Shown piece after piece: positions 1,095 to 39,594 of a stretch of DNA of 64,000 nucleotides. The notes under the pieces are model-generated. The model was given only the letters and a program-made list of their open reading frames with translations, searched no databases and was not told the DNA's origin. The DNA comes from Botryllus schlosseri (taxonomy: Eukaryota). Numbering within the stretch: the first letter of the stretch is position 1; each line of letters begins with the position of its first letter. Position numbers and translations under genes: made by a program. The stretch covers positions 8,308,001 through 8,372,000 of the forward strand of contig CM119378.1 in the NCBI GenBank assembly GCA_051294905.1, given 5' to 3'.

Positions 1095-4000
1095 TCATCG
1101 CCTGTAGTACGAGTAGTCGCTACCTATGGAACCGTCGTTATCGGTGTCTGTCATTGAATTGCCGTGCATCCGGGGATAGGGACCCAAGGAAGGGTAAGCC
1201 GAAGCAGTGGGCATGCGTGCTCTGTAACGGCGATCATCTCCACTCCCAGTGGGATATCCATAAAGGTAGCTACTGCAATAGAACGCGTGGTGTCAGGAAA
1301 TATTTAGCACTTTATACCACGGGATGTATGTTGATGTTCTTTTGTTTCCTGTTTTCTTTTGCCCTATTTATTTTATCTAATTGAAAAGTCGATTTATATA
1401 TATATATGTCGAAAAAAAAATTCCAAACAAAATTGACTAAGTCTAGCCACCACATCTGATTTTGCACAGAGCTGGTCAGTATCGAGGTACTTCTACTTTG
1501 TTCGAGTACACAAGTATTGCCTACTATAGCACTAGTTATTTAAGTAGTCATATTATTAGATTACTTGCACTCAGCAGTTTATAGGCCCTATGCATCCTTC
1601 ATACTTTGGATTTTGTAAAGTAGAAATTCGTTTTGAGGATATGCTCCCATCACTATTACGAATGAAAATCTCATGACAACTGGGGTGGGGGGAAGACCCC
1701 CTGTATCATGGTGACCGGCTACATTCTCGGCAAATTGTACGTATTTGTAGTGTGTTTATTGGTCATTTTGCGTTAGTCGCGAAGATGCACCTTGCTATTT
1801 TGGTAATGGCCACCACAGATTAACTGTTAAATGTAAGTGATCCACCGACCAAATCTACTTGTTCAAACTACTCTAAATGCCTCTCAGATCTCCACTTTCT
1901 ACATCTATATTTGAAGCAGTTTTGACATGCCTCGTAAGTTCCATACTTCTGCTTATTTGAGTAGAAATTTACGGCGTCACCTCTATACTTCTACAATGGA
2001 GTACTTCGACCGCCTCTGGATCCGTATTCTATAAATAACATGTCTTATTATCGCTGACCAATCAACCCCTTACTTTTGCTTAATGCTCCGTCCCTTTACC
2101 ATGTATTTCCGAGTCAAATGAGCCAGTTCCAACAGATTGATGACGATTGACAGTGAAGAGACGACATACATAAAGTGAAGAAATATGGTTTTTTCCTGCG
2201 TTAAATAGAATCGTGTGAAATAGATTATGCGTGCATCCTTCGGAGGCATAATCAAAGCACGCGTACCCGTGGTCTTGATACATAGCAGTCGACCGTTCGT
2301 GGGCACGGATCAGCGGTACACACATACAGTTCGTTGACCTCAAATTTGTACATGTTGTACTGCGTAAAAACAAATAAAGCATTGCGTTAAATTGGCGATC
2401 TCAGTAACATGTGCAATTGCGCATTCATGGTTGAAAATATTCACTCATCCAGAAAAATAGCAACACCATTTCAACGCCATAAACGTTTGCTACATCATAC
2501 ATTATCTATGACAGGGGTGGCCAACCTGCGGCCGTAGAAGGAAATTTGTACGGCCGTGAACACGTAATTCAATTAGCATGTGTTGGCGGCCGTCGACATG
2601 CAATTTGAATTAATGAGTTGACTCCCGATTTCTTGAAAGATTTTAATTAATCTTGAAATTTTCTTCGCGCTGGGCGCGATTCATGTTGACTTCATTTTTC
2701 GATTAATATAGTAGCGCCTTTTGCAATCGGAACCCAACAATACAGATGCGAACAGCAAAAGAAAATGATGCGCCTCATATGGAAATACCAACTCGGAATC
2801 GTGTGCTCCTCACTATACTGACAATCCTGATGGTGGGTCAAGAAATAACAGCATGCTACAAAGTGACTAATAACGATTGGCCCACCCAAAGATGCATCAT
2901 AATTTATAACTTGCCCCAAATTTCCGAAAACACCCCTGCATCAACTCTATACCGGTGAATCTGATCACATTGGCTGAGAAGGATAAATATTTGGTAGTAA
3001 TATGTAAAACTACCAATATCAATGACGAAACTCATAAGTGAATCTGAAAAAATTTTCGCGCTTCGCGCTACTATCAGCATTCCCTTAACATTACCAGTAA
3101 CCATTCGCTATTTAGGTGCGTATATTAAGCCTACATCATTAAATATGCTGGTCGGGAGTTCGCCGGAAATGGACATACACACTTTAACCTGGGTATTTGG
3201 CGCCCAGCCCGTTCATTACGACTATTCCCTGGAATGCGGCCGTCGGCTATACATGAGTTGTCGAAATGCGGCCGTGAATGGCAAAAAGGTTGGCCACCCC
3301 TGATCTATGACGTCATCGGATTGCCGAAACCTATTAGCCGATTTTCAACCTGCGACTAATATATACAAATGCATAGCAGTGAATTTTGAACGCACTTGCA
3401 AATACAGAAATACCGCCTCGATGGCGATTGTGAAGATAGTCTGGGTGAAATATGCCACAGATATCGCCCGCGTCTTCATGACTTCGGATTTTCCGTCTTT
3501 GTTGTACACAGTTTTCATTTTCACTTGTTTTCTGTAACGAGATGCGTTGCATACGCGTTTTCATTGGAGTAAGATAGTCAGTATATATGTTATTTTGAGC
3601 ATCCGTGTGCACTGTGCAGTGTGCATGTTTTGGTGAAGAAAACAGTGATTCGACTATACTGTATCTGATGAAAACCGACAGAGGAAATACCCGAACAGTA
3701 AACGCACATTGACCAACTGCGTCTACACCATGTGGTGAGACATGTCTTTTCATCGCTGTCCATCTTATTAGATTCCTCTGCGTATAGGTTATTGCTCATC
3801 GAGAGTGCTGTTTACGTGTAACTGTGAATGCCTCTTTTAAGCACGTTTATCGACTTCTGTTGGTATAGGCTATTTATGCAGGTCAATGTGGATATTTGAT
3901 TGGTCTACATACATCAACAAGTCGTTTCGATTGCTTCTTTCCTTCATATTACCGCATTCCGAGACATTTTTTATTTAATGATAAAGCTCTGATTACTTCT

Positions 4001-7000
4001 TGGGTAATGCGTTGCACTATGACGATTACTATACTCACTTTTCCGGTTCCATATTGACCACCTCAATGTGCGGATGAAAAGACGCACGACCTTCTAGATT
4101 CATGGAGTTGTTCTTCGTATCTTTGACTTTGTGAACAAGCACCCCCACCGCTGCTAGAAATCAGGTACAGTATTCATAATTGGCGCAATGTGGAATAAAT
4201 CTGCAATAAAGTCGTTCTTATGCCCATCTCCTACCGGGTTCAGTTCTAGGTTAGACAGCGCCTAAAACTGTTGTCATCGATCTTCGGTAACTGATGAATT
4301 ATAATTATTTTGATGCACTGCATCTCAATGTGTCGCATGCATCTGAAAAACTCTCCCGAATCTGACAAAAATGAAATCAATCACCGACGGAGGCTGTTGA
4401 TTTTCTCGGGTAAAATATTATTATCATAGCCATCATACGGTTGCGGGCCCGGAATTCGATAAAGTCTGCACGAAATTTACAATTCCCATAGCCGGGAAAG
4501 AAAAGATAATGCGGGCGTACAATTTAGTTAGCCTTCAGAAAACGAAATCCCATCGGATGTTGAAGCTGATTTCCCACGCTGAACTCGTTGGAATTCGAGA
4601 ATGCGGAGCGGTGTTGAGTATCTCCAGAAATCGCAAGGTGGAAACGATGATGGCATTTAAGCGTAAGGTGAAAGGGCGTGAAGATGCGTGACGAAAAACA
4701 CGAGCGCTAAGTTTTCTTTCCGCTTTGCTAGCCTTCCAAACGAAATAACTCTAAAAATGATCGCACCCAGGTACGACGCATATACGTGACATGAATAGAT
4801 CGCCAGTTAAATTCTGTACGTTCGTGTCCAATAGGCGATAGAAAATCAAACGGAACCAGCGGCTATGGCAGATCTATGAAATCACCAGCCGTATGACATG
4901 CACGATTGCACGTCATCAAAATTACAGTTTAAAGAGCGTCCCATCGCATACCCCGTGTAGCCTTTGCGTCATCATATAAAATCATCTGAACGTGCCCACT
5001 GTCCGTTCGTCATTTGGTGCATTGCGCTGTCGGCTACAACGGGTCAAAGGTCACATTCATTATACGGAAGCGCGGCGGAAATGTATCACTTGATTGCTTG
5101 CGATATTTTCAAAGTGTTTAATCCGATGAATTGCTGTTACCATCCCGATCTTGCAATGTCACCATAGTTAAGACTTAAAAGATTTCACGCGTTTATGATT
5201 CGTGGGTATGCGCATTTTGCATTAGATGATGTATACAACCCAGACATCCACTATGAATGACTCACACATTTTCAGTTACGGGGTAATAGAGAAAGTCTTA
5301 AAAAGTTCAAGGCATCAGCACAATAATTTCGCAAACAAGGCTGTAATCACGGGTTTCGGTATAATGAGTTGAACATAAGATATTCTAGGATTTTGTGCAT
5401 CTGGAAATGTTTCAATTTGGAAATTTAGCCTGATTAGCGCGGCCGATGAAACATATGGCAGATTGATAGTAAATTCATTGGTGAAATTACTTGATCTTCA
5501 ATGCCAAAAGTATAATAATACCAAGTTAGAACAAAACAAAATTCAATTCAGGTACAAAAAAAATTAGGGTTAGCCCATGAATATACATTTCGATTCCGAG
5601 CAAGAAGATTCAACATTTATCCGTTTACAAATATCACCTAATCCTGCAACTTTAGAGGAAAATATCAAAGTTCGCAAACACATGATCCACCTTATTTGGG
5701 GATGTAAACTGCGTCACGGTTACGCGTAATTCAGTGTTATCATCACGAGGGGAATTTCTAAGGAAACAGCACCGCTAACGAAATAACTGGAATACGGGTC
5801 AAATTCTCCCTATAATCGATGTCACTCGGCGAAACTATGAATACCGTAACCCCACCTCACCCATTATGCGCACCACGCAAAAGTCAAGATGAGTATAGTA
5901 TAACGATGTTGTTCACTGCTGCGGATTTACATTAAACACTTCACCACCACAATACCACAACCCGACGTGATAAGACTAGAAAACACCCAATGATATACCA
6001 TATCAGATAATTACACACTCAAGTAGCTGGTTAAGTGCTTTCGTCACGAATAAATCAAGATGATACGACTGTGTGAAGAAATTGCGATCGAAAAGATCTC
6101 ACAAATGTTCTGCAGCATATATAGAATTAAAGATGTCGGAAATACAACAGATTAAATCCTTCATTGCATGACCTTACATGTACAAACAGTGATAAATTAT
6201 ACCAAACAGTTACCTCCTCAAGGAGCTGGGAAAGTGCATACTCCCCGACGAGACCAGGATGTATTATACCGTGGAAAGAATGGCACTCGAGAATATTCCG
6301 TGCTATGAAGTGTTGCGGTTGATATGAGGGGCTACGACAGACTAAACAATCAAATATTCAAAAGATTACTGTTATATCCATCCACCCTGTTAGCAATTTA
6401 TCAAGTATACTTCGAGTTCGAGACCGCCATTTCTTGATAATGCATGACTAATGACTATACCAGCACGGTATTAATGACTGTAGCAGGTGTCTCCCTCGAA
6501 CACGCGGTCTGCTACAAGATTCTACCAAACTATGCGTGCTAATTTCTTCGCAGAAACTATTAAACATGATTTTACTCTAAGCTTGATCCTAATAATTTGT
6601 TATTTTCCTATGCTCAATGCTCAGCTGTTTCGCGCGATTTGATCAGTTTGTCTTTCGATTGTGCAGCATGTTAGCGTTAGGTTTGCCGACGATTACCCCT
6701 GGTGAGTGTGAGCCGAACCCGAAAATATGCGGGTTATTTCAGTATGAATGTACTTTTCAATTGTATATTGAAGCTATGTACTTCCAAATAGGCAAATACT
6801 AGAAGTACTCCAAATTGGTTTGTGCCGCGGTTAGGCTCAACGAATAACGATTCCCGGCCGACGACGAATTATATTGTGCCAGAAAATAACATGCTTCAAA
6901 GCAAAGCTGAGAAATAAAGATTTTTACAAGTCTAGCTAGAGTGATCTATACGGGAAGAATTCGCCACCCCACCACAAAAGCACATCAAGATGCCGATGCA

Positions 7001-9179
7001 ATAAGACCGACGTAATGAAAGTTCAAATTATAAAAACACCACCACAAAGGAAGCTATTCGCTACCTAGAGATACGTTGAATACGTTACGATCGCGGTGAA
7101 TGAGGCATATAAAGCACATCAGACTTTACGTACTTGGTCGTCCGTCGGGTAAGTCTTCGTAGTGAGGCAAACTGGAATTGTTGCTCCGACTCCTCGACTG
7201 CGCGATACGCTGCTCGTCCGCGTAATTCAATTTCTTTCGGCGGCGCCGGTTCAAATTTCGATTTTCAAATTCGTCTGGAAAGAGCGAGGTTGAAATCAAG
7301 GGCAAAGTATGTGCACGGAAGTGTTAGTCGCTGTTACCCGCAAACAGAACACACAGCCTTAACATTGAATAAAACATGGTGCTTTGTTGATAGTGTTGGC
7401 ATACTTTTGTTTAAGACTGCACAGTGCACACTCACAGTAATTTAGTTGGTGGTGGACTTGGACAAGTAGATAATTCTAGTTGTCGAACTGGATCAATCAA
7501 AGCGACATGCCGGTAAACTAATTTTAGTCTAATTTGTGAAATCTTGCTTTTCTCTAATTCTGGTCTAATCCGTGAGTTATATGATCTAATTTTAATTATA
7601 ATAGAATTTCTTTTTTTTTATAAATGATACACGAGAACTGTAATGCGAAACCCTCATAAGAACGAATGATTTAATATTAACGGAACTTGATTGAATGTCT
7701 GAGTTTTCGTGAATTCATTAATTTTAATTCTAATCTATTTTGGAAGGAAACTGTGTAGCTAAAATTCTAATTTAAGCTAATTTCGAAATAGCTGTAAGTA
7801 CAATTCTGATTGTACTCTAATTTGGAGAAAAAAACTTTGTAGCTGTAATTCTAACTCTAATCTAATTTTGAAAAACTAAAAATTTTCTATCGCTGTCAAG
7901 TCCGGTTGGCGGTACCATGGAAGGGTGTCGTTATTTTGTACGAGTATTAGCCAGGCATCATATAGAGATGTTGCGAGTAGGTTATAATACCGAGACAATG
8001 ACACGAAATACTCATAAATTACCAGATCGCTGGTCAGCAAGTTCGCAGCCTCCCTCTTCGTTCCTAGCTGATAGATTCGACATCTTGTGCAAAGCGAACA
8101 CCACAAATATCACGCTTGGCATTCCGACAATTAATATCTGCACAGCCCAGAACCTTTAAATTTCAAATATGCTCCGTGGTAAGAAACGTTGGTACAGAAT
8201 GTTTCGAAGAAAATACGTGTACATGTAGTATACATGCCGAAATCTTATGCCTTCGCGAAGGCCAGTGACTACCCTTGGCAAACACTCACGATCTTATTAT
8301 GAGTTCACGGCATTGTGTCCGTTTTCGAAATGGCGATGCTCCGTCGGGACTTCATATTCCATTTTTCAGAATTCGTTTGTTTACTTCGCAAGAAACTTAA
8401 TCATGACTAACGTAAAATCACAATATTAGAGCATAATAGGCCTACGTATTACGCAACATGCGTCAATGTATTATTACCGTGATATACACTACAAGTTAAG
8501 TTACAAAGGGGTCCGCGTAACAAGGAATAAGGCGTAACAATTCAGTCAACAAATGTTCGGCTTTGATTAAACTTGATCCGTAGAGGTTCGAGCGATCTTG
8601 GTAACACACGAAATGCTACTCGAAGATGGTGGTAAAACTCATTCACAGTTATTCACCGGAACGGTTAACTGTCGTTTTAGACAGCGGGCTGTATTTCAGA
8701 ATTAGTCGGCTTTAGCCATATTACAGGTTTCCTGAATGCAGCCTATACATATGACAGACGATATCACATATACGGATATAAGGGTTTGATCGCAACAGCG
8801 TTTTGCGAATTGCATGCTTTCAAGTAACTTACTGGTCAGATTGACCCGCTTCCCAGGCCGGTTTGGTCATCGGATCGCTAACTTGCTACTTCTTTACTCT
8901 CGATAGATTTACTGTTACGCCAATATAAATGAGTTTAGGATGTCAATAACCATTAATTTCTATACACCCATGGGCGCAGTCAGCGTGCAGTGAAATTTGT
9001 CGAACTTCTTATTCGTACATTGCAAGGTCATTCTTTTTATCATGTCACAATGTATATTCGTTACGTCGTTATTGCGAAGATTTAATCCCCCTCAAATTTT
9101 TATCCGCACAGACCTGCATCAGCGACATGTATAATATAATACGATAGGGACCCTGATAACGAAAATTTCAGAGGCCCTA

Positions 9180-9210
<31 letters not shown>

Positions 9211-12200
9211 TATTAGGCTACTTTGGGAGACATTTGCACTTATTTTTGTAGCAGTTGGGGGACGAAAAAAATTGGGAGACAATTTTGTGTCCCCCTAATT
9301 CTTGGCGACATTTTTCCCTCGGTTGCTATCGTCTGTTAAGCAAATCCGTTTGGGACCACGCTTATTAGTCCCTCATTTGTCCCTTCCAAAAGAAATCAAG
9401 TCATGAAGTAGCAGGAATTTCGAGTTACAATGGCGACATTTTGACCCCTGTATAAACCCCGTATTTTGAAAAGTGGCATTAAGTCGACAATCAATAGGGG
9501 GGATTTTCTTCCACTTTTCGCGTGTATAAAATGACACCGCTTTGCATACATGATAGTTTTTGTTTAGGATTTACTCAGTTTAGACCATTCCAGTATATAT
9601 AGGGATTTTAAGACTTTATACACTGTTTTAAAAAATGACGACATAAAAAATGCTGACTACCATTGTGATGACTCGACATAAGTTCTAGTTGCGATCTTGG
9701 TAGACACCGCGGATCGTACGATTTTAATGACGACTCCTATTATTTGGGCCCTGATTAGCTCTTGGCAAAGGCGAAAGGGCACTATACCATCGTTAAATTT
9801 TGTTGTTTAACACTCGTGATACATATTGTGAAAAAGAATCCCTGCTTTACCTTAATACAACTCCATCAAATATATGTATTGGTTATAGCATGATAAATAT
9901 TCTGTAGTATTCCCCGCACCCAATATATCGAGCTGATAGGTCGTTGATTTGCTTGTGTCAAGACAGCTTTAAGATGCTCTGTCAGTTGCGAGCGTAAGGC
10001 ATATACCTTTTGTCAGTTATTCTCAACCTTTCATGTCTTTGCGGACCCCTTTTGGACCGTCGCGAGCCTCAGCGAACCCCCGACTTTTATTTCTAATTTA
10101 GCTCAAATTATTGTTTCCGCTCAAGCCAGACAATGTGCAATGCGGTACTAAAGATGCATTGCGACATATTGAACAGAGAAGAGAATGGTAAAACTACCAA
10201 GCACGGTTATTATTAATCTATAGCATCCATCTCGGCCTAATCGTGAAGGTGATTGGCTTCCATTTTTTCTCTTCAGCTGTGTTTCAGTTGCTTGTCCTGG
10301 CAATTCAGTGTTCGCTTTCCTGGCATTCGCAAATCCATGTCTTTGTCGGAGGAGTAGCCCAGATAAACCAAGGAGGGTTGTTGCAAATAAGAAAGGATTC
10401 ACCTTACTAATGCTCAAGAGAGAGAAAGAGAGAAAGCAAACAAACTTATTTTTATCTTAACCATCGGATACCGTGGATACCAGTTTTCGAATCTTAGGTC
10501 TGACCCGCCCGGGGATTGAACCAACGATTTACAGATCAAAAAGCCGCACGCATCACTGCTACGCTATCTCCCCCATTCCTGCCACACCCAGATATTCCTA
10601 CCCCGCTTGGGGGAGGGCGAGCTCGAATGGTGCCAAAATTATTTCGTGAATGAACACTAATTATTCGCTATTTATTTGAAAATTTTCGTAACTTTTTAAT
10701 TTTTCTCGCGCTGTACGCGATTTCATGTAGATAAATGTTTGTTTATTAGGCACCCTTCCTCCACAAAAAATGCGCATCATCTGTAGACGTAGGCATCTAA
10801 GCGAGCGTTGGCCATTACCACGCCACGATGTAAAAAGACATATAAAGTGTGGGTCAACATGGGTCTCAGAGAAGTGAGCCAAAAAGATCGTCAGCAAGAA
10901 AACATTAGCCGAAAAGGATTTCCCTTATGTTGACCGTAAACTTCGATATAAAAATGTCTTGATCCGGGTACCTAAATTGCTGGCGCCGAATATTCATGTC
11001 GTGTCAATCTGGACCAGATGAATATAAAATGTGACCTAATATGGCCGCGGGTGTAATCATCCCTCTCCACACCCACAATAATTTCGTTGCTAGAGAGAGG
11101 AGAACAGCAACGACTAGCATAATAACAATATATCTCGTCGTAATTTTCAAATTATGTGCAAGGTCCAACGGACCATGTGACCTCAATCAGCTTTCCATAC
11201 CTTCGTAAGTTTGTAGCAATTCCCTAAATGATTGTAATCACCCTATCATCTTACCAGAAACGCATATCTGGGTTGAAAACGCGTGATATCAATCAACCGT
11301 AATTTTAACATTAAATTCAACTGACGTAGCTCATGTCATCCGCTCATACCATGCAGCAGTGTTGCTTGAAAAATCAAACTCATTTATTCGTCATCACGTA
11401 CAAGGATAAAATGACTCTGCAAAGCTAACATAAACAAATAATGATGATCAGGCTGAAATGTGGCGATATAGGTTCGGAAAGCAGCCAACTGCAAAGTTGA
11501 CTTGTTTTGTCATTTCATAACGTCACAATGCTGCGGCAAGAGAGTGTCCATTCAAACACCTATCACTGGCTATCAGACATATTGTGGTATCAGTTGTAAA
11601 TACCCAGAGTGTCGGTTTCGCACAATGCGCTGGTTACAACGCTCGGTATAATCTAGGCTTACAACCGATAATCTTACATTATATGCATTGCACTAACTAA
11701 AACATGGGTACAGATATTCTATTTTCCTTATATTAACACACGGTAAGAAGCAGTCAGATTCGGCTATCAATTACGGCCCCGTCCATTCAAGCCAAGGCAA
11801 CAATACATATATTGACATTGACAGTCTGATGGTTAAGTGATCAGACCGTCACGTCATCATCGTTGATCATTATGGCAGACTAGGGAGACCGCAGGCACTT
11901 TGATCAGAATTGCTTGACGGCAAATTCATTAAAGTGTCTTCCCAGCTATCTTGACGTCTCGATTGTTTGCAGTGGCTGAAAAACAAGGCAGCGATCTAAT
12001 GCCAAATTGTTAGCTCCATGCACAGTACATACGTTTGAAGATTATACACAACTCCAGTAAATTTCAAAACAAAAATGCAACATGATAGGTTGCTTCATCA
12101 AGATGGAGCTTTATCATAGGCCACACACTTGATTTTGAATCAATGAAACGAAAAGGCAGATGTTATCGTAACTATGTGCTCACTCACACAGCGTATATAT

Positions 12201-15200
12201 ACGATTTATCAATATTTAGAAAGTATCTAGCTAGTTGAATTATTTGAAATTAATCGGGAAACAATATAAAGTTAACGTTACGCGATAAAAGTAGGCCTAT
12301 TCCCAGATATATTGAGCGTGAAGTCAACATTTTACTAATTGAGTTCTGTGAACACCTTTTCAAGGACGATTCTAAATCCGTTGCTACTCACATAGACGTT
12401 TAATAATCTGTCAGAAAGCACGTTACGCAGTGAAAATCTACCACGGCACGAATTGAATTAGTGAGGGAAACATCACAGGACGCAGCCTCCGTTTGGCGAC
12501 TGTTCTGTCCAGTACTTATCCTTCCGCGTGACGTAGTTAACGAAATATAATACTTACAACAGAAGGGAAATGCATTCTATACTGAATACTCACTTTTTGT
12601 CATGGAAAAGGAGTCAGCGTGGCGATCCAAATTTGTACGCTATTGTACGCAGAATTCAGCAGCTATGTAGAATACTCTTCAATACACAGAACGAATCGTT
12701 CGATGAAAACACTGATTGGGAAGTAACTCCATCACGCATGTTTGCGTCTTTAACTTTTCATATAAGATTCGTGTTAAGGATTCATGCTGATATACTTGTC
12801 ATGAAACTTTAGGGCCATGAGGTGCTAATACATCTTCTGCATCATTCTACATCATCTGCTAGTCCATCGTCCAAAGTAACGTCCATTTACAATAACCTGC
12901 TAATACGCTGAAACTAATCTTTCAATCACTCGGTGACAGCAGACATGAGACCTTACCAGTTGATGGCACGCAATTGGTCGCGCGTACGTATACAATACAA
13001 AAGTCATCGACCTAATTCAACATTGTGAATTGTGCCTATCTCTGTAAGAAAGGCGGCATGTTAAATTTTTTGTGATAAAAGTAGGCTATTCCTAAGCTAC
13101 TGATCGATCTGTATATTCTGCGAATTCGGTAGCCTTTGGGAGACAAAAACCGACTTTTCAGACGCCAATACCGGGCCAACCCCGTGCCCAAGCCGTTGAA
13201 TCGGATATCATCGCGTTCAGTTCGACCAGAGGAAAACGGGGATAACTCTGTCGAACCCCTAAGACCAGCGGTTGTCGATCGGTATTTCGATCTATGTTCT
13301 GATACCGACCGATCGAAAAACCAACTGCGTAACCCGTATTGGCGTACCATCACGGGTTTTTGGAAGAAAACTTTTGTCTACGCGTCTCAGCCCCATTTCC
13401 CGGGTATCGTTGGAATTGTAATCGAATTACGCGTCTGCCGGTACCAAATTTATCCGGCTACGATATTCGGTTGGCGAGAAATCGGTGATTAAAAAAACTG
13501 TGAAAAAAGCGCTATACACTGTTTTTTGAAGGCCGATCCCGAGTCGGCTGAAAGTTCGATACGATCGTATCGGGTATCGGTCTACGCGGGGCCCGAAGAC
13601 GAACGCAGCGGTACCTCGTATGGCCCAGTGGTGTGAACGACCGAGACGGAACCTCGAAAAGCCCGCCTATGAAAAACGTGAACTTCTCGGATGATCCACC
13701 GATCCAGGATAATCCGAGGATTATAATCGAAAAACTCACATAACTCCGCTTCTACTGGTCGGAATTGAGTCAAATTTGGTTTGCATCGTCTTTGAAGACA
13801 GCTAAACAATTTCATGGGGTTGGCAGAAAAATTTGAATTCTTTTTCAAAATTTCACCTAATAAATTAAAATTTTTAATTTGATCTGCGGAGTCCTTTACT
13901 TGTTAGAATTGAACCAACTTTGGTGTGCAGTGTTCTTAGGGTAACCTGACAATTTAATAAGTCAATGGCTGGAATCCGAAATTTTACTTTATTTTTGAAC
14001 AGCCCTAGTGTACGTACGTACAGTCCATTTATGATCAGTGCGGGACTTGAAGCACAGGCCTGCAGGCATAGGCGGAGCCTGGAGCCTATTCAATCATATT
14101 ACGTCGCATGCCATGCAATACCTCGTTTACAATGATGATGACCCCCATTAAACGCCAATGTAATCAAGGAGGTTCGCAATTCGAAATGAAGATAGGTTGG
14201 GATTAGTTTATACAGGGTTTGGCGCTTTGGCCATGTTGATAATTGTAATTATAATTGATCGGGCAGGGTTATTACCAAAGGAAGTCATATGGGCGAATCG
14301 AAACCGTTAGTTGATTTGGCGGAGACAAATACTTTGTAAGTGGCCGGGATGGTAATATCTAGAGATATCATAATGAAATGCTATTGTCTCACGTACATTT
14401 CTACTTGTAAATGTACAGTACGAGTGCACAAGCACATACGTACATTTATGATTAGTGCGGGATTTGAAGCACAGGCCTGCAGACATAGGTGGAGCCTGGA
14501 GCCTAATAAATCACATAATGTCGCATGCAATACCTCGTTTACAATGATGATTATCTCATCATGCGCCAAGGTAATTAAGGAGGTTCGAAACCGCAACTGG
14601 CTGGTATCGCAACTGTGGATCATATCACTACGTTTTCTCGCGACGCTCTCACTAATTGAGTGGCCTTGAATTCGAGATCTAGACGTGTCTCCGAGTACAG
14701 GCGAATGTTGGGTTAGCTTTGCTGGATTTCAGGCGGTGCGTTCTCTTCGGTATCAAGCAGAATATTCATACACGCATCTGTTTAGAATTAGGTTTGACTA
14801 GTCTGACTATATGATGGATATACTAACCGACTCTGACTGCGACAACGAAGCATTTGATCCTAAGCCAATAAAGCTCGGAAGATATGTCTCTTATGACAAA
14901 GGTACGTACCATGTAATTCCGTATGATTACATGTATTTCAATATATCAGTGGTTCCTAATTATATATTAAACAAGTGTAAATAGTCTAGAGAGTATTAAA
15001 GGACAACAGAAAGGTGGTATAACAATCTTTCGATTAAATTATAATCGCAAATTTACATTTGACAAATACATCAAGGTACGGCTCGTTCGTTGGGCTTTCT
15101 GAGACATAGGGACTATACGCCATGTGTTTCGGTCATCGTAATTTATGTAAAATGTGTGTCATGTGCGTATACAATTATGCATAGTGTTGGTATGTTTCTT

Positions 15201-18200
15201 CCCTGTACCATCATGAATGATTCAGTTTACTGATATGATCATACAGCTTCTTATACGAGTAGCATAATATTAGTTGTTTCGCTTGAAGCAGGCCTACAGT
15301 AGGCCTATATCTATGTTGAAGTCGAAACTGGAAGTATTATCTCTACTCTTTACTCAACTATCAAATGTCTATACCACATTTCAGTTAATTTACTATTCGA
15401 ACAGAGCAATGATACAAAGTTTTAAATTATTGATCCGAGCCCGAAATAATTCCAATGCTGACGCCAAGTTTTGAAAACGAACCATTCATCATTATGTCTA
15501 TTATCAATTGAGTCAATTTGATGAGGAGTAATGTTTCGCAATGTTTCGATGATCGATGATATGGTATATTTCATCAAATAGCGTTGTTATCCACGTACAA
15601 TGTACATTGTGCAATATGTTTACGGTTTGTTGACAAGGATATTACGTGATGTGTTCGCTCCCTTATTACTACCGTGTACCATGAGCCAGGGGTGTCAAAC
15701 TCGAATTGCTTCGCCGGTCGGATTCAGACCTTCAAATCGCTCGCGGGGCGGACCAGTTACATCAATCAAAAATGTTACCTCAAAATCAACGCCTCAGTTG
15801 AGCACTTGAATACTCAATTATACAGCCCATGTATGATGCGGTTATACTCTATCAAACCCGTTATTCGCAAACAATATAATTTTTTCAAGTCCGTAATAGA
15901 ACCTAGTCCAACCTTTGACGACTTTGTTATTGTCGATCCGTCTGCAACAGTAATTAAAGGCAAAGTCGCTATTGCTCTTCGTTGATTTTAACTATGTTTC
16001 ATATCGATTTGGGGAACATCATTTCGTATGGTATATTTTGATGCTGTCATCTTACCAAGTTTCAAGACTATGACTTTATGACTAGCGCAGTAATTTCGCT
16101 GTCAAAGTCGAGCATCTAGTAAATCAGCCCGCGCCAATATATGGTCGACTTTGATAACGTAGGCCTACTTACTACTTTAATTATTGGGTCACAGCCTTAA
16201 ATCTTCATACAATGTTAGATGCCATCATGAAGATATACAATCCGAAGTTTTGCCATATAGGAAACAATCAAAATGTACACATACCAATACTGTTTTTCGT
16301 GAAAAATCAGTTATGCGGTAGGCTGAAGGTCAGGTGATTGCATCTTACACTGAACCAATTTTTGAGGGTGTGACTCGGTGATCAGGATAGTAATTTCGTT
16401 ATGATAGTCGAGTATATCAAGTACATCGCTGACCTGCCATCTAGGCTACCGCATGATAGATTTTTCACAAAAGCCGAAATTGCTATAATGCTATATGTAG
16501 GTTTTGAATGTGTTTTATCCCGCGGGGGATAACAAATATCGTATTGTATATTCTGATGGAGACATCTAGCACTGTATCGAGATTTAAGGCTGTGACTCAA
16601 TTATTACGGTAGCAATTTCGTGATTAAAGTCGCGTATGTCAGGGTGCGCGCTGATTTGGCATTCAGCCTGCCGCATAGCAGATTTTACTGCAAAAGCCAG
16701 TATTGGTATGTGTACAATTTAAATATATTTCATACGGCTATGGATAATCAAATTCATATTGTATATCTTGATGAAGGAATCTAATACTTAACCAAGTTTC
16801 AAGGGTGTGACTCTATAATTACAGTAGTAAGTACGTTATCAAATTCGCGTATCCAGGGTCTGCGACTCTGCGTGCGCTGGTCGACATTATATCGGCGCGC
16901 GTTAATTTACTAGATACTCGACTTCGACAGCGAAATTACTATGCTAGTCATATAGCCATAGTCTTGAAAATTGGTACAGCGCAAGATGACAGCATCAAAA
17001 TATACCATACGAAATTATGTCACTCAAATCGATATGGAACATAGTTAAAATCAACGAAGAGCAATAGCGACTTTGCCTTTAATTACTGTTGCAGACGGAT
17101 CGACAATAACAAAGTCGTCAAAGGTATCTGGGTCTGACAGTCACGTGGTTTTCCGAGTGTCCACACCACCTTTGAGTTCACGCTGGTCCAACAATCTCCA
17201 GTAATATAATGGCAAATACGGTGAGGTGTGCGCACTATAATGTGAATTATCTCGCAGTCATTTCTCGGTCATCATCAGCGAATAAATTTTCGAAGATTGA
17301 TTACCTTGTAAGGAAGGTATCATGTTATGGGCGATTGCACGCTACTCGAGAATTATTTATTTTGACACCTTCGAGTGAACTCAACCAACATCTCAAAATG
17401 ATACGATACATTTATATGATTGTAAAATTGTCTACAGCATCACATACATCTGCATGTAGCGTACCAGTTACTCACTGTTAATGTTGAATACAGTATGGGC
17501 ACTCCTTTTACCAAAACTATCTATTCAAATGCGACGCATCAGTCACTCTTGAATCTAAAATGACAGACAACACGATACATGATACATGCAACACGATAGT
17601 CTAACCTACGCAAATTCGTTTCATCACAGCTAATCGGAACAAGCATCTTTCAGATACTGTTGATAATGAAGATGATGTCAATGCCCGGAAGAGGCTTGGA
17701 TCTTCGCTACATATCATCAGTCAAAATGAGATGCAGAATGATAGAGGTGGCTCATGTGAAACACCTCCTATGAATAAAAGACTAAAATCACTCGATCGTC
17801 AATATAACGACGGAGAGGCTGGACCCAGTGGACATGAAGAGGGTGAGTTTACAATATTTTGCCACATTTCATTTTCAACATAAGTGTTCAACCTAATATT
17901 CTCATATTCAACAGTACCAAAATATATTGATGACAATTTATTAATTCGTAGTGGTATTACTATTCCAATACATTTATCGTTCTAGCATATAGGTACAATG
18001 TACATTGTACATGGTCGGTATAGGATTAGTGAAACGTTACACACAGAACTCCTCTATCCCGCAGGAAATGAATAAATACCTAAGGCATCATTTTTCAGAT
18101 TATGAAATGGACCCAGATGCGCACGAGGAACTAGACGAAGACTTTGAGGAGTCATGTATCAGTGAAGCTTCGGAATATGAGCCACAGTCTTCATCTTCGA

Positions 18201-21200
18201 CTACGGACAGTTTCAGTAGCGATGATGGCAGGGAAGAAGAGAAAACCCGGAAACCCGCAACATCTCAGCAAAAGTCATCCACTTCAGACTGTTGCGACAC
18301 CAATATCAACAGCAATAATGAGGCAGCCATGGATATCTCATGTGGCTCACAGTCATCAACGTGGGCTCCAGATGGTTCTGATTGTGAGTGGACAGACCTG
18401 GAAACCTCAACGCCAAAGAAGAAAGCTGTGACTTCAAGGATAAAGAAAAAGCGGGCAAGGCCGAAGAAAAAACCGGCAAGGCCATGCCTTTACTGCAAGA
18501 AGTTCCAAACGAAACTTAACCGACATTTAATAAATAAGCATCCTGAGGAAGATGAAGTCAAAGAAGCTCTGGCTTTAAGTGGAAAATTACGGCTCCTCAA
18601 ATTCGATTTATTAAGGAAGCAAGCAATCATGCAACACAACAAAAAAATGCTACAACTGCAGATGCCATTGGTCTGTGAAAGAAAAAGCCGTCTTTCCCAA
18701 TTGAAAATTTGCCAGAATTGCCAGGGTTAAACTTGGTTTCTCGTTTCAAGAGCGTCAAGAGCGCCATAGATGGACTCGTGAAGAAACAGCTGAAATCCTA
18801 AACAGATTCAAGGATGTAATTTATGAGGAAGGAGACAGCAACAAAGGCAGCTTGCCAGGTAGAGTGGAATGGGTTTGTTCGTTTGTGGTATTCATGGTGT
18901 TTGTCGACTACTATGGTCATTCCCCCCATAATTGCCGACTTTTAGCAGGGCCCACTTCTGGGCTTTTATAAGACGCCGCTTACAGGGATGAGATGGCGAG
19001 GGGGAATGTAAATTGATGCTGTGTGTTCGCGTAATATACATTTATTAGTTAGTGATCATGGCAGTGAAGATATCGATTTCTTTGGATCCTACTTCCGAGC
19101 TAGGCCAACCTTCGATGTTATATGATTTCTTCTGACCGTCGTCGTTGAAATACCATTGAACCTTACAATAGTTATATGCAGCTAGTTGCCCAAATTATAG
19201 ATTTAATGAAATATGCTCGTGTCTTTTTAGGATACAAAGAAATTGGAGAATTTGTGGAAAGCAGTGACATCCTGAAAGGTTTACCGGACATGCAGAGGAT
19301 AAAAATGGTTAAAACCAAAATCTTCAATGAGAGAAAAAGATGCCGCTCTGCACTGCATAAGGGGATGTCACAAATGCACGAATAGTCATGGACTATGACA
19401 TCAGACTTTCAGCACGTAGCGTCAGTGATCTCTAGCACTGACGACTGTAGATTACGATTGAGCAATTTCGTTTAGTACCTGGTGGCAATTTTAAATGTAC
19501 AATTCGTTTCATGATTTTCGTTGCATTCTCTTCACAACATTTTGTTGCGAATGTGTTTTGATAAATTGGTTTCGATCGCATGCTTCGAACTATTTCATTT
19601 CTTGGTGTGATTTAGCAGGTTGACATTGGTAGAATCGAACGATTTTTTGGCCGCTTTCAGCATTGGCTGGAGGATGCACCCATGGCTCACCATGGGGCGT
19701 AGCCTTATTGCTCGAGGTCCGAATTACTTAACAGTGAACAAGTTGGCGTATGGCTTAAAACAAATGAAAGTTAGCAATTATCAAGTGCCCAAGATTATCA
19801 CGAATCAAGATTCAATGTGATCTGCTGTAGGGTTTTTAAGAGAAACATGAATTTGGAGCGAAGTTTATACGGTAACTCCTTACAATTTGACGCGGCTATA
19901 ACATGGCGAGAGTCTGAGATCGGTTTAGAGACATGTTAAAGTGGTCTTTATTCGGTAATATTGGATCAAAAAGTGTACAGTGCCTTAGTGGAAAAATTGC
20001 CTCATACCTGCTAGTAGACTGTATGGTCCATGAGACGTTATACTTCCGAGGGATATAAGGGCTGCTTATATTAAACCGAATATATTTATTACCTAATTAG
20101 AACTTGGATCTGCTATCGCGACAGAGTAGCCACGGCTGGCCAACGAATGTCATAGTGATTTGGATACTAGCCGTAAAAAACTGGTGATCTAATCTGCAGC
20201 ATGGCCAACTGTAGCTTCTTATAAAGACACATGTTCCGTATTTTCACAGCAGTTTTCAAACGCAAATATGTGCGTGGTGAAATGGCGTGGTCATTGGTAT
20301 AATCCACAGCTGCAACACCAATGGGTTGTTGGTTCGAGTCCGGCTGAGGACGACACGAGAATTCCTACCCAAGTGTTGGAGGTTTATCTAGGCTCGTCGT
20401 CATCCTGTGATCCGCGTAAGCGGTGATTTATAAAAGCCTAGGAGTGGGCTGTGCTAAAAGTCGGTGAATAGGGAATCAAAAAATGAATATAGGCATACTC
20501 TAAAACTACGAAATTAGTCAAAACACCATGAATAAAAAACAAACAAACGGCGAATTATATATCGCGATCATCGATATCGTACAAGGATGACGTCGTGGAT
20601 TTCAAATAGTGACGTCAAAAGTGATTGTCATTGGTAAATGACTCTTTTGACGAAACTGGTTCCCGAACCTTGTCATATAATACGACGTCAATGTCCACCT
20701 TAGTTCAGTAACAGCAATGGTCATGGTCTGGTAATTCAAAATGGCGAATTGTCTCCCTAAGTAACGAATGTCCACTAAAGTGGTCTATTAGATATTGAAA
20801 AAGTTGGGAAAAATTAGGGCGACCGCAGTTGGAGGACATTTCGTGTATATTCTAAACGCTGCGATATAAACCGCAAATCACCAGTGACAAAGCGCGGAAT
20901 CGATATTCCAAAACCAATCGAGTTATTTTCAGACGCCTAGCTTGTCTCCTTCTGTTGGCGATAACTGTCGCCCAACTGCTTCAAAACAGGACTGTCCACC
21001 AAAGTAGTCTAATAGGTAAATATATATATATATCTATATACGTTATGAAGACACAGCGCTATACATACCTGATCTGGGAAATAGGGGCAAACCGATTGTA
21101 GCAAACATTTGTACATCCCGGTTGAAGTGTGTTGCATATAAATTGGCTCTGTTCATCGCTATAAACCGTGTCGCCGATACTAGCAACGATGATAATCCTG

Positions 21201-21354
21201 TCAAAACATCGCATGTTTGATTGCACACGGTCGTATAAGCGGACCTCAAAGTTTCATGCCTGAATATGAAGAAGAATGTAATCCACAGTTTACCGATAAA
21301 AGTTGAGTAATTCGCCACCCCTTCTAGAAGCTTTTCAAAAACGTGCCACGCCAT
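1095..21354 (-). CDS. Connexin (gap junction protein) paralogue A, 9 coding exons, 379 aa. Exons: 21260-21354, 21069-21197, 8023-8153, 7134-7274, 4039-4153, 3396-3531, 2267-2359, 2074-2195, 1095-1272
   Basis: Spliced by hand with consistent phases (1140 nt including stop). N-term/TM1 [32 protein letters not shown]; E1 [30 protein letters not shown] (C-x6-C-x3-C); TM2 [23 protein letters not shown]; TM3 [20 protein letters not shown]; E2 [25 protein letters not shown] (C-x4-C-x5-C); TM4; tail ending [12 protein letters not shown]. All introns GT-AG except intron 1 (GC-AG). Additional small loop exons cannot be excluded. Confidence 0.93.
2512..3302. mobile_element. hAT (Charlie-like) MITE, specific to connexin A intron 6
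   Basis: TIR CAGGGGTGGCCAACCT / AGGTTGGCCACCCCTG; exact 8-bp TSD ATCTATGA; empty site in B at approx. 28195-28205. Confidence 0.92.
7453..7904. mobile_element. hAT-like MITE with (TCTAAT)-type internal repeats, connexin A intron 3
   Basis: Ends GGACTTGGACAA / TGTCAAGTCCG; TSD GTTGGTGG/GTTGGCGG (7/8). A remnant of the same repeats lies at the orthologous place in B (approx. 33620-33800). Confidence 0.7.
9180..9204. repeat. (TA)n microsatellite flanking the large transposon; partner tract at 21021-21040
   Basis: Read directly from the sequence. Confidence 0.95.
10416..10574 (-). mobile_element. tRNA-derived SINE, truncated, same family as 22698-22963
   Basis: Reverse complement: A box TAGCGTAGCAGTG, B box GGTTCAATCCC, then GGGTCAGACCTAAGATTCGAAAACTGGTATCC; CT-rich tail. 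Confidence 0.7.
10600..10940 (-). repeat. Fragment of the CAGGGCCGTAAC hAT-like family (matches 45130-45470 and 57690-58030)
   Basis: Reverse-complement similarity, e.g. cgttggccattaccacgccacga vs tcgtggcgcggtaatggccaacg. Confidence 0.65.
13683..14007. mobile_element. Right half of the TAGGGCTGTTCAAAAA palindromic MITE family
   Basis: Matches 41110-41439 and ends tttttgaacagcccta. Confidence 0.75.
14015..14590. repeat. Direct duplication of a ~160-bp block (approx. 14015-14180 and 14437-14590)
   Basis: tttatga(t/c)..gtgcggga.ttgaagcacaggcctgcag.catagg.ggagcctggagccta...tgcaatacctcgtttacaatgatgat occurs twice. Confidence 0.85.
15687..15790. mobile_element. Truncated hAT MITE left end
   Basis: CAGGGGTGTCAAACTC terminus with GCGGGGCGG/GCCGG subterminal motifs; no matching right end found. 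Confidence 0.5.
15911..17125. mobile_element. Foldback-type element (~1.2 kb) with ~240-bp inverted arms and internal diverged tandem units; superfamily unassigned
   Basis: ACCTTTGACGACTTTGTTATTGTCGATCCGTCTGCAACAG... is inverted at 16880-17125. Inner arms 16225-16310 and 16690-16780 also pair. An accaagtttcaag..gtgactc motif recurs near 16055, 16355, 16575 and 16793. Confidence 0.8.
20271..20485 (+). mobile_element. tRNA-derived SINE
   Basis: A box TGGCGTGGTCATTGG, B box GGTTCGAGTCC; core ggaggtttatctaggctc shared with 23514-23720. Confidence 0.7.
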
Positions 21355-22697
21355 GTTGACAAGACGAACGCTATAAACTAATCCAGATATAAAATTTGAA
21401 CCACCTTATATTTGAGAGAGCTATATAAAAACGAAGAAAACCATTGAATGAGAGAAGTATTTGCGCCCAAAATTAACCTGCAGTTGCTTTATCTTCTCAA
21501 CCGAAGAACGTTTTACCCTTAAACGTGATTGCTCAATGGTCACCGCTCAGCTCAGTTACGTAATCGCCCAATGTTTGTTCGCCCTTACAGTATGCTCCTA
21601 TTCATATACAAAGTCAGTAAGCCCAATTAAGCAATTTGAGAAAAAAAATTATACTTGCTTCCAACGTAATACCAGTCCGCCTGCTCTACCCAAATCGTTC
21701 CATTCCATACGTTTTATCCGATGACGAGAACATTTCACTACCGTTACAACTTGTCTTTGCAACCGATTTTTCTGTTTACGGGATCGTGATCATGCCCTTA
21801 CCAGGATTTTTCGATTCTTCAAGGTTATATACAATTATACACACACGATATATAATCCTGTTCATTGGTTATGATAAGTTTCCTGCGTCTGTATGCAAAT
21901 TCGTACATTGATTACGGCAGGGTCGCCGGAACGGAAATCATGATATGAGAAGCATAATATATCTAGAAAGCGTGAGATAACTACGACTAGAAAGAACATT
22001 CATAAAGACTGAACCTTCCTAAATCTGTGTACGCAGGAGACTATCAAACGCACGAAATAATTTTTTTGAATGTCTGCCGGTCTGTCATAAACATGACAGT
22101 GGCAAATGTGTATCAGGGTTACATGTGCAGTGCATCCATATTGTCTGACATTTAAGAAATACAATATTTCAAAGCTGACACATATGATCCAGTCCTGCTT
22201 GTAATATTGCAACAATTCAATGTTTCTGTATTATTCACGAAGACTAACTGAGTGTGCAATTGTTACTGTTCCTAAGACGTTGTCAATATGGGGAATGCCA
22301 CAGTTTAGGATCCTTTTTGAGCTACCAATAGACATTTGTCATTCACTTGAGTCACTAAATCCGGATTCCTAAGTCCTCCAGCAACCTATGATAACAGTAT
22401 CATGCCAATGCCAGTATCACGGCAATAAACAAAGCTACCGAAAGTAGCTCTACGATGAGAACGCTGTTTCTCATGATCGAAAGCGAGATATATTCTCTCT
22501 CTTGCCAAGAAATCTTTTCTCATATCGCAAGGATGCTAAAAGTTCCGAATATTTATTTTCCAAGTCGCCCAAAGCCTATGTCAGATCATTTGACTTCTGT
22601 TGATGGACTACTCTATACGGTCTGAATCATCTTCGATTTCAAAATCTTCATCATTGGACCTGCTATCCCTAAGATCTTCAGCAAAATTGTGTAAACC

Positions 22698-38800: not shown

Positions 38801-39594
38801 TTATCACATATACGGAAAACGAACTTTGAGATCGGTATAGGCCTACGGCCTATACGGTAAACTCCTCAATTCAGTTTAGGGTTTGATCTCAAACATCGTT
38901 TTGCAACTACTTGCTTTCACGTAACTTGCTGGTCAAATTGACCCGCTTCCCAAGCCGGTTTAGTCATCGCCAACTTGCTACTTATTTACTCACGATAGCT
39001 TAATTTTTACGCCAATATAAATGGAGCTTATGAGGTCAATAATAATTAATTTCTACTCCCACGGGCGCAGCCAACGTGCAGTGAAATTTGTCGAACTTCT
39101 AATTCGTAAATTGCAACGTCATCCGTTTCATTAGGCCACGATGTGTATTCGTTACGTCGCTATTGCGGGGATTTAGTCCCTCTCAAATTTTTATCCGCCT
39201 AGACCTGCATCAGCGACATGTATAATATAATACGACGGGGACCCAGATAACGAGGCCCTAATATAGATATATATATTATATATATAAGTTACGAAGACAC
39301 AGCGCTCATACCTGATCTGGGAAATTGGGGAAAACCGATTATAACAAACATTGGTACATCCTGGTGTAAGCGTGTTGCATATAAATTGGCTCTGTTCATC
39401 GCTATACACCGTGTCGCCAATACTAGCAACGATGATAATCCTGTCAAAACATCACATGTTTAATTGCACACGCTCGTGTAAGCGGACCTGAAAGTTTCAT
39501 GCCTGATGAAGAAGAACGTAATCCACAGTTTACCGATGAGAGTTGAGTAATTCGCCACCCCTTCTAGAAGCTTTTCGAAAACGTGCCACGCCAT
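26877..39594 (-). CDS. Connexin paralogue B, 9 coding exons, 375 aa. Exons: 39503-39594, 39312-39440, 33909-34039, 33449-33580, 29694-29808, 28290-28425, 27961-28053, 27766-27887, 26877-27054
   Basis: Same exon structure and phases as A, all exons open (1128 nt including stop). Length differences are in-frame: 3-nt deletion in exon 1 (FFFIR vs FFFIFR) and 9-nt deletion in exon 4. All six extracellular Cys are kept ([12 protein letters not shown]; [12 protein letters not shown]). Confidence 0.92.
28843..29626. mobile_element. hAT-like MITE, specific to connexin B intron 5
   Basis: Ends CAGTGGTTCTCAACC / GGTCAAGAAACACTG; flanks ATTAAAAT/ACTTAAAT (6/8); absent from A at approx. 3970-3985. Confidence 0.7.
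29904..31223. mobile_element. hAT-like element with internal hAT fragments, specific to connexin B intron 4
   Basis: Ends CAGACCTGGGCAA / TTGCCCACCCCTG; TSD GGTTAGAC/GATTAGAC (7/8); empty site in A at approx. 4248-4262; internal CAGGGGTCGGCAAC at approx. 30397. Confidence 0.8.
31965..32290. mobile_element. Diverged left half of the TAGGG(C/G)T..TCAAAAA MITE family
   Basis: taggggtcttcaaaaatgac...cacaccaaatttggttc..ttc..acc is similar to 40822-41100. Confidence 0.55.
35640..36799. mobile_element. Nested hAT (Charlie-like) element
   Basis: CAGGGGTGGGCAAC / GCTGCCCCCTG ends, GGCCCGC subterminal motifs, flanks CTCTAAAT/CTGTAAAC (6/8). Confidence 0.65.
36910..38187 (+). mobile_element. Nested hAT deletion derivative retaining a transposase dimerisation-domain remnant (37807-37945)
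   Basis: Ends TAGGGTTGGATTATCCGG / TATCCGAACTAACCCTA; exact [51 protein letters not shown] matches the hAT C-terminal dimerisation motif. Confidence 0.9.

Follow-up and report, generated by a model that had tools for sequence, protein, structure and literature searches.

Which enzyme moves an 11.8-kb transposon that is bounded by terminal inverted repeats (TIRs), lies within a (TA)n tract and carries the remnant of a recombinase gene? The question is raised by a 64,000-nt stretch of the Botryllus schlosseri genome (contig CM119378.1, positions 8,308,001 to 8,372,000, referred to below as the window), in which the element occupies positions 9205-21020 and has 28-bp inverted ends. Its features are collected in Table 1. 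The results presented here suggest that the element is very probably a non-autonomous, internally deleted copy of a tyrosine-recombinase DNA transposon, Crypton-type in the broad sense, and we infer that it relies on a full copy for movement.

The open reading frame (ORF) of the window copy starts with an ATG at 18068, its first exon has an acidic/basic N-terminus, and its stop at 18728-18730 was made by a deletion. As read from the frame, the window copy can encode only a 221-residue stump ending in the middle of zinc finger 2. The original prediction, made by a model from the letters of the window, had expected an autonomous partner with an intact recombinase elsewhere in the genome. Such a partner was found on the same chromosome, in the form of a 13.6-kb copy that has 1,826 extra bp exactly at the window position 18727/18728. 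With them, the 241-codon ORF of the window becomes a 707-codon open frame; they contain the remainder of finger 2, the entire recombinase, intron 1, the linker exon and a portion of a 59-nt intron that is predicted. The window ORF stops while both C-terminal exons survive because the deletion ends inside this small intron. A six-frame search of the genome with residues 300-700 as the query returned one complete stop-free copy only, that on C8. Partial recombinase copies on C15, C6 and C16 belong to a subfamily of about 90% identity with a 1,358-bp deletion, and two degraded copies lie on C3.

The recombinase itself was identified by its fold. Sequence searches of the PDB with the protein and with the profile were uninformative, so that a fold search was needed. 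Modelled by AlphaFold, residues 300-700 of the full copy form a two-domain tyrosine recombinase (mean predicted local distance difference test score, pLDDT, 91). All of the top 50 Foldseek matches in the PDB have the tyrosine-recombinase fold, including Xer, Cre, Tn1549 Int, other integrases and the integrase-like regulators MrpR and YopR. VIA-align gave Z scores of 15.2 for IntI4, 15.1 for XerH, 12-13 for Cre, 11.8 for Tn1549 Int and 10.8 for lambda integrase over both domains, with the IntI4 and XerH alignments covering model residues 15-395. AlphaFold, Foldseek and VIA-align thus agreed on the phage-integrase-type fold that had been anticipated for the full-length protein, and the R-K-R-H-Y residues were found. 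By this modelled structure, the C-terminal 400 or so residues of the full frame are a tyrosine recombinase with a core-binding and a catalytic domain.

Conservation was measured on a HMMER search of 1.84 billion representative proteins, which gave 3,314 clusters (388 below 1e-30) matching from the first zinc finger through the end of the recombinase. R518 (ARRGGE), R641 (MRHRxST), H664/H667 (HMGHS) and Y676 (VYQ) are invariant in a 47-member alignment, and K566 (GKG) is conserved in at least 90% of the members. The catalytic R-K-R-H-Y set is present in the full copy and absent from the window copy because of the deletion. The first His of box II is seemingly replaced, judging by the sequence alignment. 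Pfam Phage_integrase was matched by 12/47 members (best E 1.2e-5), and the full ORF alone gave a sub-threshold match (E 0.047). DUF3504 was matched by none of the 47, and Pfam returned nothing useful on the ORF pieces of the window copy.

The structure of the gene was then compared with RNA. The peptide motifs reported earlier, namely finger 1, the LR...HN motif, a truncated CxxC finger and a C-terminal domain, are all present in the window; the LR/HN spacing is six residues and not five as had been given. The C-terminal domain is split over two exons, with W-x2-EE...PG in the first (18751-18858) and ...VK in the second (19231-19385). The former aligns with the C-terminal tails of the homologues P0045, P0157, P0155, P0001 and P0071. 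RNA reads and contigs were aligned to locus L040, the 3′ part of the 13.6-kb copy. One spliced contig shows a GT..AG intron at L040 3106-3291, immediately upstream of the stop that ends the frame of the long exon. Another GT..AG intron, at 3732-4103, corresponds to window 18859-19230, with read support from 3729/3731 to 4102/4104. The 3′ untranslated region runs to a poly(A) site near 19580, where 43 tailed reads end (L040:4453). The predicted multi-exon, spliced plus-strand gene was thereby borne out by two introns and a poly(A) site. Two further reads span the window-type deletion junction, indicating that deleted copies are transcribed. Moreover, 137 reads start at the first base of the last exon with an overhang equal to the 3′ end of the upstream exon at 14841-14901. 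This in-frame junction to 19231 was the commonest form in one RNA run (137 versus 6 reads for the neighbouring junction); the form skips the recombinase, and its predicted peptide of about 80 residues holds the last helix region only.

Downstream of the first intron, the frame continues for a 95-residue linker and then meets a stop; in all copies examined, a different frame encodes the C-terminal domain. A third intron, a predicted 59-nt GT..AG intron, would restore the frame. Its donor GTGAGC/T is kept even in an 81%-identical C3 copy. The spliced model that includes it reads through 841 residues without interruption between the first ATG and the stop, and the tail of this model aligns unbroken to the extreme C-termini of homologues from Styela clava and a sea cucumber. 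The full element is thus predicted to encode a protein of about 841 residues with two zinc fingers, a two-domain tyrosine recombinase, a linker and a small C-terminal three-helix domain. The last is conserved in several homologues, and its three-helix fold was modelled with a pLDDT of 82. Pfam gave no match for it in seven homologue tails, and the fold search gave weak homeodomain/Myb-like matches only (E > 1, template-modelling score up to 0.77 by target). A role of this domain in DNA binding is a lead suggested by the modelled fold.

The ends of the element and its insertion site were examined next to these results. The inverted repeats stand where they had been placed; their identity is 25/28 by direct count, and not 26/28. 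The inverted match including the flanks extends over 9185-9232 versus 20993-21040, and a second inverted block (9244-9263 versus 20967-20986) gives weaker TIR similarity up to about 60 bp. The termini read TTTACC, and position 13 of the TIR is G at left and A at right ends among the listed termini that pair into elements. The terminal 120 nt contain four [G/T]NGAC[A/G] motifs at the left end and three at the right, compared with a background of 0.46, in the same sense relative to the terminus. These are candidate accessory binding sites. Both sides of the element carry (TA)n, and the left flank was called as (AT)13 at 9180-9205 by Tandem Repeats Finder; scans of the element for tRNA, Rfam families and tandem repeats showed nothing beyond this flanking (AT)13.

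An empty target site was present in the window. Sequence like the left flank (8781-9204) recurs at 38878-39286 and sequence like the right flank (21022-21599) at 39267-39805, both at 83% identity, and the two matches meet in a single uninterrupted TA-rich tract of about 27 nt in a tandem connexin paralogue. The filled site has about 47 TA-tract letters versus about 27 in the empty one. On the host side, positions 2-40, 29-84 and 61-107 of PF00029 are covered by the exons 21232-21348, 21041-21205 and 8054-8203. The next host exon after the N-terminal pair at 21041-21348 is 8054-8203, placing the element within the intron between them. The connexin exons on both sides are on the minus strand and the element gene is on the plus strand. 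The (TA)n flanks, the empty site and the antisense position in a connexin intron, all of which had been proposed from the window alone, therefore stand. The connexin gene is tandemly duplicated in window 1-40000 with introns of about 83% identity, and only the first copy has the element, which by eye lies about 50 bp from the apparent connexin splice donor.

The TIRs are multicopy. An exact-pattern count with at most one mismatch found 126 termini genome-wide versus 0 for the reversed control, and TATA stands directly before 121 of them (96%). Each 400-bp element end has at least 40 genome matches at 95-100% identity, and the TIRs are always linked to the same internal sequence. The family comprises about 60 copies, spread over at least 17 contigs, which have exact boundaries in common and flanks that are unrelated, and an alignment of the flanks of other copies showed nothing shared beyond the TA run. 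All 29 distinct ends examined, taken from loci L001-L043 plus the window, adjoin a TA run; these runs are 3 to 25 nt long, with a median of 19 nt. The family is recently active. The same data bear on whether the copies might instead be a domesticated, recombinase-derived host gene family that was spread by segmental duplication and is not mobile now. Many homologues are annotated as ordinary genes, some of them fused to SET or WW domains, and two C2 copies (20.68 and 20.76 Mb) share identical flanks and lie within a segmental duplication. However, the number of copies, their exact boundaries and unrelated flanks, the empty paralogue site, and the finding that copies of 98-100% identity are mostly gene-less deletion forms make this explanation scarcely credible.

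The size classes, obtained by mapping twelve copies onto the window copy, span 8.1-13.6 kb. The 18727/18728 deletion junction is common to the window copy, C2:26861252 and C2:35954585. Identical internal breakpoints at unrelated loci indicate that the gene-less and truncated derivatives were themselves mobilised and that only the end regions are needed in cis. The deletion derivatives are thus mobilised in trans. Most copies also inherited an internal palindromic block (15911-17125), which is probably a nested foldback or MITE-like (miniature inverted-repeat transposable element) insert. Several deletion classes break inside this block, at 16213, 16549 and 16588.

Enzymes other than the recombinase were searched for in 26 ORF pieces, six of them from the window copy and 20 from both strands of the 5′-most 9 kb in the full copy. 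No reverse transcriptase (RT), RNase H, DDE or Gag domain was found in them, in agreement with the earlier statement that no DDE transposase is the element's own gene. The interiors of two variant classes had only short ORFs, the related S. clava element described below had no further long ORF, and no SET domain was found in the window-family element by tblastn or a local hidden Markov model. The recombinase was the only transposition enzyme found in the copies inspected.

These negative results bear on two further explanations. The element could descend from a retroelement with a tyrosine recombinase (DIRS, Ngaro or PAT-like) whose RT has been lost, and its ends would then be remnants of DIRS-type inverted repeats. 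DIRS1 has inverted terminal repeats and a related recombinase (cited in PMC10871703), and no function has been assigned to the roughly 9 kb at the 5′ end. On the other hand, no RT, RNase H or Gag domain was found in any piece, the 28-bp TIRs are the only terminal repeats, and the internal complementary region of such elements was not found. All genomic copies retain introns that RNA reads show to be spliced, and gene-less deletion derivatives still multiplied. We consider such an origin very improbable.

The element could also be a composite, in which a cut-and-paste DDE transposon of some kind (Ginger2-like, Tc1/mariner-like or other) contributed the TIRs and the (TA)n preference, the recombinase gene is a passenger or belongs to a nested Crypton, and the DDE enzyme is encoded elsewhere. 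There is a precedent in MarCry-1_FO of Fusarium, which combines mariner TIRs and TA duplications with a Crypton recombinase (PMC3212892). Ginger2 prefers RTATAY targets (PMC2836005), and (AT)n is the insertion site of Ginger2-bearing nimaviruses whose TIR is 46 bp long (PMC10871703). A duplication of the TA dinucleotide could hide inside the TA tract, and five long copies lay outside the enzyme check. MarCry-1_FO and Ginger2/TDD thus resemble the window family in being TIR-bounded and in their TA- or AT-rich targets, but they are moved by a self-encoded DDE transposase, and no DDE domain was found in the window or full copy, nor a long ORF in the variant interiors or the S. clava element. Ginger2 encodes a gypsy-like DDE integrase, has TGTNR termini and makes 4-bp duplications (PMC2836005), whereas the termini here read TTTACC and a target-site duplication is unreadable inside the TA tract. 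Compared with Tc1/mariner, no transposase was found, and the flanks are TA runs of 6-25 nt and not a bare TA. The 96% of ends that adjoin at least TATA, with a median run of 19 nt, are far above what a TA or 4-bp duplication would need. Ginger2 and a MarCry-type composite were the main rivals and are not supported; we regard the composite as unlikely. An 11-nt likeness between the element TIR and the inner end of a sesarmid nimavirus TIR was rejected as probably due to chance, being at the wrong end of the nimavirus repeat.

Relatives in other animals bear on the same point. The closest named homologues are three S. clava proteins of about 50% identity, followed by proteins of sea urchin, sea cucumber, starfish, bivalve, abalone and Aplysia. 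At the S. clava locus L052, a recombinase gene (48% identical) lies in an 11.15-kb segment bounded by (TA)20 and (TA)14, with imperfect 30-bp TIRs (24/30). Over its first 110 bp, the segment can be aligned with the left end of the window element, motif array included (z 4.9 versus shuffles). The combination of TIRs, (TA)n and recombinase, kept in this relative, is thus old and stable and not a one-off composite, and the persistence of alignable ends together with the recombinase at 48% identity fits ends and enzyme evolving together. The S. clava locus L051 had no clear ends. The relatives on L048 and L049, which are metagenome-type contigs, have very long (TA)n within 220-650 bp of the gene, and no TIRs were detected at these two loci. 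Between L051 (17659-21352) and L052 (20327-24855), about 3.7 kb of sequence is shared at 95-97% identity in two aligned blocks with an insertion in L052, starting exactly at the flanking (TA)n, while the recombinases of the two loci are about 49% identical. Either another repeat associated with (TA)n or duplication of a target region may account for the shared sequence. In addition, a SET methyltransferase domain (residues ~50-160) precedes the fingers and recombinase in annotated proteins of four distantly related animals, namely P0157 (S. clava), P0007 (Strongylocentrotus), P0185 (Haliotis) and P0232 (Mercenaria). In S. clava it lies inside the TIR-bounded element, whereas it is absent from the window family; it may be a chromatin-modifying module of such transposons.

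The tyrosine-recombinase element was then compared with known systems. Classic Cryptons (CryptonF/S from fungi and stramenopiles and CryptonA/I from animals; Goodwin 2003, Kojima and Jurka 2011) have a tyrosine recombinase as their sole enzyme and no RT, their non-autonomous copies outnumber autonomous ones, and circular excision followed by short-homology recombination has been proposed for them, as would suit the window family. The window family is set apart from them by its 28-bp TIRs, by zinc fingers at the N-terminus and a three-helix domain at the C-terminus, and by its microsatellite target. Cryptons have terminal direct repeats of 4-6 bp (PMC3212892), whereas here the flanking (TA)n runs are variable in length and TIRs are present; the (TA)n could act as the "direct repeats". 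Animal CryptonA/I elements have no C-terminal domain (PMC3212892), and CryptonA recombinases match DUF3504, in contrast to the window family, which does not match it and has a conserved C-terminal domain. According to the passage on these elements in PMC8869645, which cites Kapitonov and Jurka (2012) on cnidarian elements, some CryptonV families insert into microsatellites; TIRs are not mentioned for them there. Such targeting resembles the (TA)n insertion seen here. CryptonV as described there comes from cnidarians, however, and the closest named relatives of the window family are from tunicates, echinoderms and molluscs; the two were compared by description only. The original prediction had named CryptonV/CryptonH; the element possibly belongs to the CryptonV group. 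Should CryptonV turn out to share these ends and this protein layout, the element would be a new tunicate member.

Cre/loxP, Xer/dif, IntI and the Tn1549 integrase share the two-domain fold (Z 12-15) and the R-K-R-H-Y residues, and the circle junction predicted below resembles lox and dif in having inverted arms that flank a short AT-rich crossover. Tn1549 and Tn916 move via a circle into AT-rich targets. The window family differs from the bacterial and phage recombinases in that its gene is eukaryotic and intron-containing with extra zinc fingers and a C-terminal domain, and in that their spacer is fixed at 6-8 bp whereas the crossover proposed here is a dinucleotide repeat of variable length. 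The tyrosine recombinases of endogenous nimaviruses are telomere-repeat-specific, with a C2H2 finger, an N-terminal SAM-like domain and (TAACC)n as the target (PMC10871703). They resemble the window family, as compared by description only, in being eukaryote-associated tyrosine recombinases with a zinc finger that insert into a simple repeat. They differ in that they lie in giant viral genomes, in their target, and in that no TIRs are described for them (PMC10871703).

A mechanism that would join the ends to the enzyme can be proposed. The recombinase would excise the element as a circle, and the circle junction, consisting of right TIR, (TA)n and left TIR, would be a near-perfect palindrome like lox, FRT or dif, in which two inverted binding arms flank the crossover region. 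Integration would be a reciprocal exchange between the (TA)n spacer of the circle and any genomic (TA)n tract, with target specificity coming from sequence identity in the crossover region. The subterminal GNGACR arrays would probably be accessory sites for the zinc fingers or the C-terminal domain. If crossover identity sets the target, no fixed-length target duplication is expected. A palindromic circle junction would explain why a recombinase-driven transposon has TIRs, exchange within a repeat would explain why the target matches the junction spacer, and the TA letters gained at the filled site would be explained if the circle carries about 20 of them. We judge this circle-excision and (TA)n-exchange mechanism to be evenly poised between right and wrong. 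The TA runs at the termini cluster at 20-22 nt, with 8/29 exactly 21 nt, mostly at right ends. Together with the roughly 20 extra TA letters, this clustering may mean that about (TA)10 travels with the element or that insertion produces a long duplication.

Several observations weigh against the reading of the element as a recombinase-driven transposon and against its proposed movement. That the recombinase carries out transposition is something we infer from association. Neither an excision product nor a circle junction nor an allelic empty site was observed, and a search of the assembly for head-to-tail or circle-like junctions found none. The clustering of TA runs near 21 nt and the extra TA letters are also expected from a long target duplication. 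Published Cryptons are without TIRs (PMC3212892, PMC13465315), making this layout unusual for the class. The 59-nt intron is predicted and not observed, and the C-terminal domain is out of frame without it. In four runs, RNA depth was zero over the part of the recombinase exon that is unique, so that expression of the full copy was not seen. Finally, the enzyme check left out the five longer copies (13-21 kb), which lie at C4:16.39 Mb, C5:20.71 Mb, C6:1.89 and 4.81 Mb and C7:11.78 Mb.

As a tentative extension that we think somewhat doubtful, this family, together with thousands of relatives from tunicates, echinoderms and molluscs, might form a separate, undescribed lineage of eukaryotic tyrosine-recombinase DNA transposons, in which the TIRs are the inverted binding arms of a lox-like site and the crossover is a dinucleotide repeat. 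Such a lineage may be marked by a zinc finger-recombinase-three-helix protein, often with an N-terminal SET methyltransferase domain. If this is true, a natural, still active repeat-targeted integrase system would exist in a chordate. To our knowledge, no animal Crypton has been shown experimentally to transpose, and their ends are usually undefinable. The sharp ends, the simple and abundant target, the many recent trans-mobilised derivatives and the one apparently intact gene of the present family make the mechanism directly testable. A eukaryotic integrase that inserts into harmless dinucleotide repeats would be of interest for gene-insertion tools. Many marine-invertebrate proteins annotated as "uncharacterized" or "SET domain-containing" are probably products of such transposons.

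Table 1. Features of the transposon, its gene, its size classes and the host locus; positions refer to the window unless a contig is named.
Feature	Position	Strand	Remarks
Left (TA)n flank, half of target microsatellite	9178-9204	.	perfect TA run of 25 nt
Left TIR	9205-9232	+	28 bp, starts TTTACCTATTAGGCTAC, G at position 13
Left subterminal region	9205-9325	+	four same-sense [G/T]NGAC[A/G] motifs at element positions 23, 55, 72, 101
Upstream exon, 3′ part	14841-14901	+	donor GT at 14902; joined by RNA reads to last coding exon
Internal palindromic block	15911-17125	.	1.2 kb; 143-nt arms, 97% complementary; further nested arms
First coding exon of recombinase gene, truncated	18068-18730	+	residues 39-258 of the full copy's 707-codon frame
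Zinc finger 1, C-x2-C...RHL..H	18485-18541	+	within first coding exon
LR...HN motif	18611-18640	+	spacing x6
Zinc finger 2, first half, CQNCQG	18710-18727	+	cut by deletion
Deletion junction	18727/18728	.	1,826 bp of full copy absent
C-terminal domain exon 1, RHRWTREE...SLPG	18751-18858	+	donor 18859 RNA-confirmed; acceptor 18750 predicted only
GT..AG intron, 372 nt	18859-19230	+	6 raw RNA-seq reads, 4 start points
Last coding exon, YKEIGEF...MHE then stop	19231-19385	+	homologous to C-termini of relatives
Right subterminal region	20901-21020	-	three [G/T]NGAC[A/G] motifs; ends in right TIR
Right TIR	20993-21020	-	28 bp, A at position 13
Right (TA)n flank	21021-21040	.	13-nt perfect run, then CTATATA
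Empty target site, tandem connexin paralogue	39262-39290	.	TA-rich tract of ~27 nt, no interruption
Host connexin exon matches, PF00029	21232-21348, 21041-21205, 8054-8203, 2267-2386, 2112-2198	-	Pfam
Paralogue connexin exons	39305-39478, 33937-34056, 27961-28083, 27804-27890		parallel set to host exons
8.1-kb class	9205-14202 and 19955-21020 retained		at least 5 copies; only these parts retained, whole gene gone
9.3-10-kb class			family size class
11.8-kb class			window copy and two C2 copies, 99.0-99.6% identity
13.6-kb class	G000:C8:20560536-20574128		one copy

Further observations were made on the family and on the window. A 12.1-kb family copy (G000:C8:8201953-8214074) lies in the opposite orientation about 100 kb upstream of the window. 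A sequencing run labelled as a different organism (runs X18 and X21) contained 58% of the sampled recombinase-region words; the family, or a near-identical one, may be present in another species or under another label. Fragments of other repeats are present in the element interior. In the 3′ part, the segments 18882-18921 and 20155-20548 (L040 3755-3794 and 5028-5421) showed an RNA-contig depth hundreds to thousands of times that of their surroundings with many different flanks, and are probably pieces of other abundant repeats nested there. An inverted pair (18926-18989 and 20410-20473) brackets this high-depth region, and one contig contains a tRNA-like TTCGAGTCC string. Elsewhere in the window, an uninterrupted 406-codon ORF at 46409-47629 on the plus strand matches Glycos_transf_1 (group-1 glycosyltransferase, E 7e-15). 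As an intron-less gene of this bacterial-type family in an animal genome, it may merit attention.

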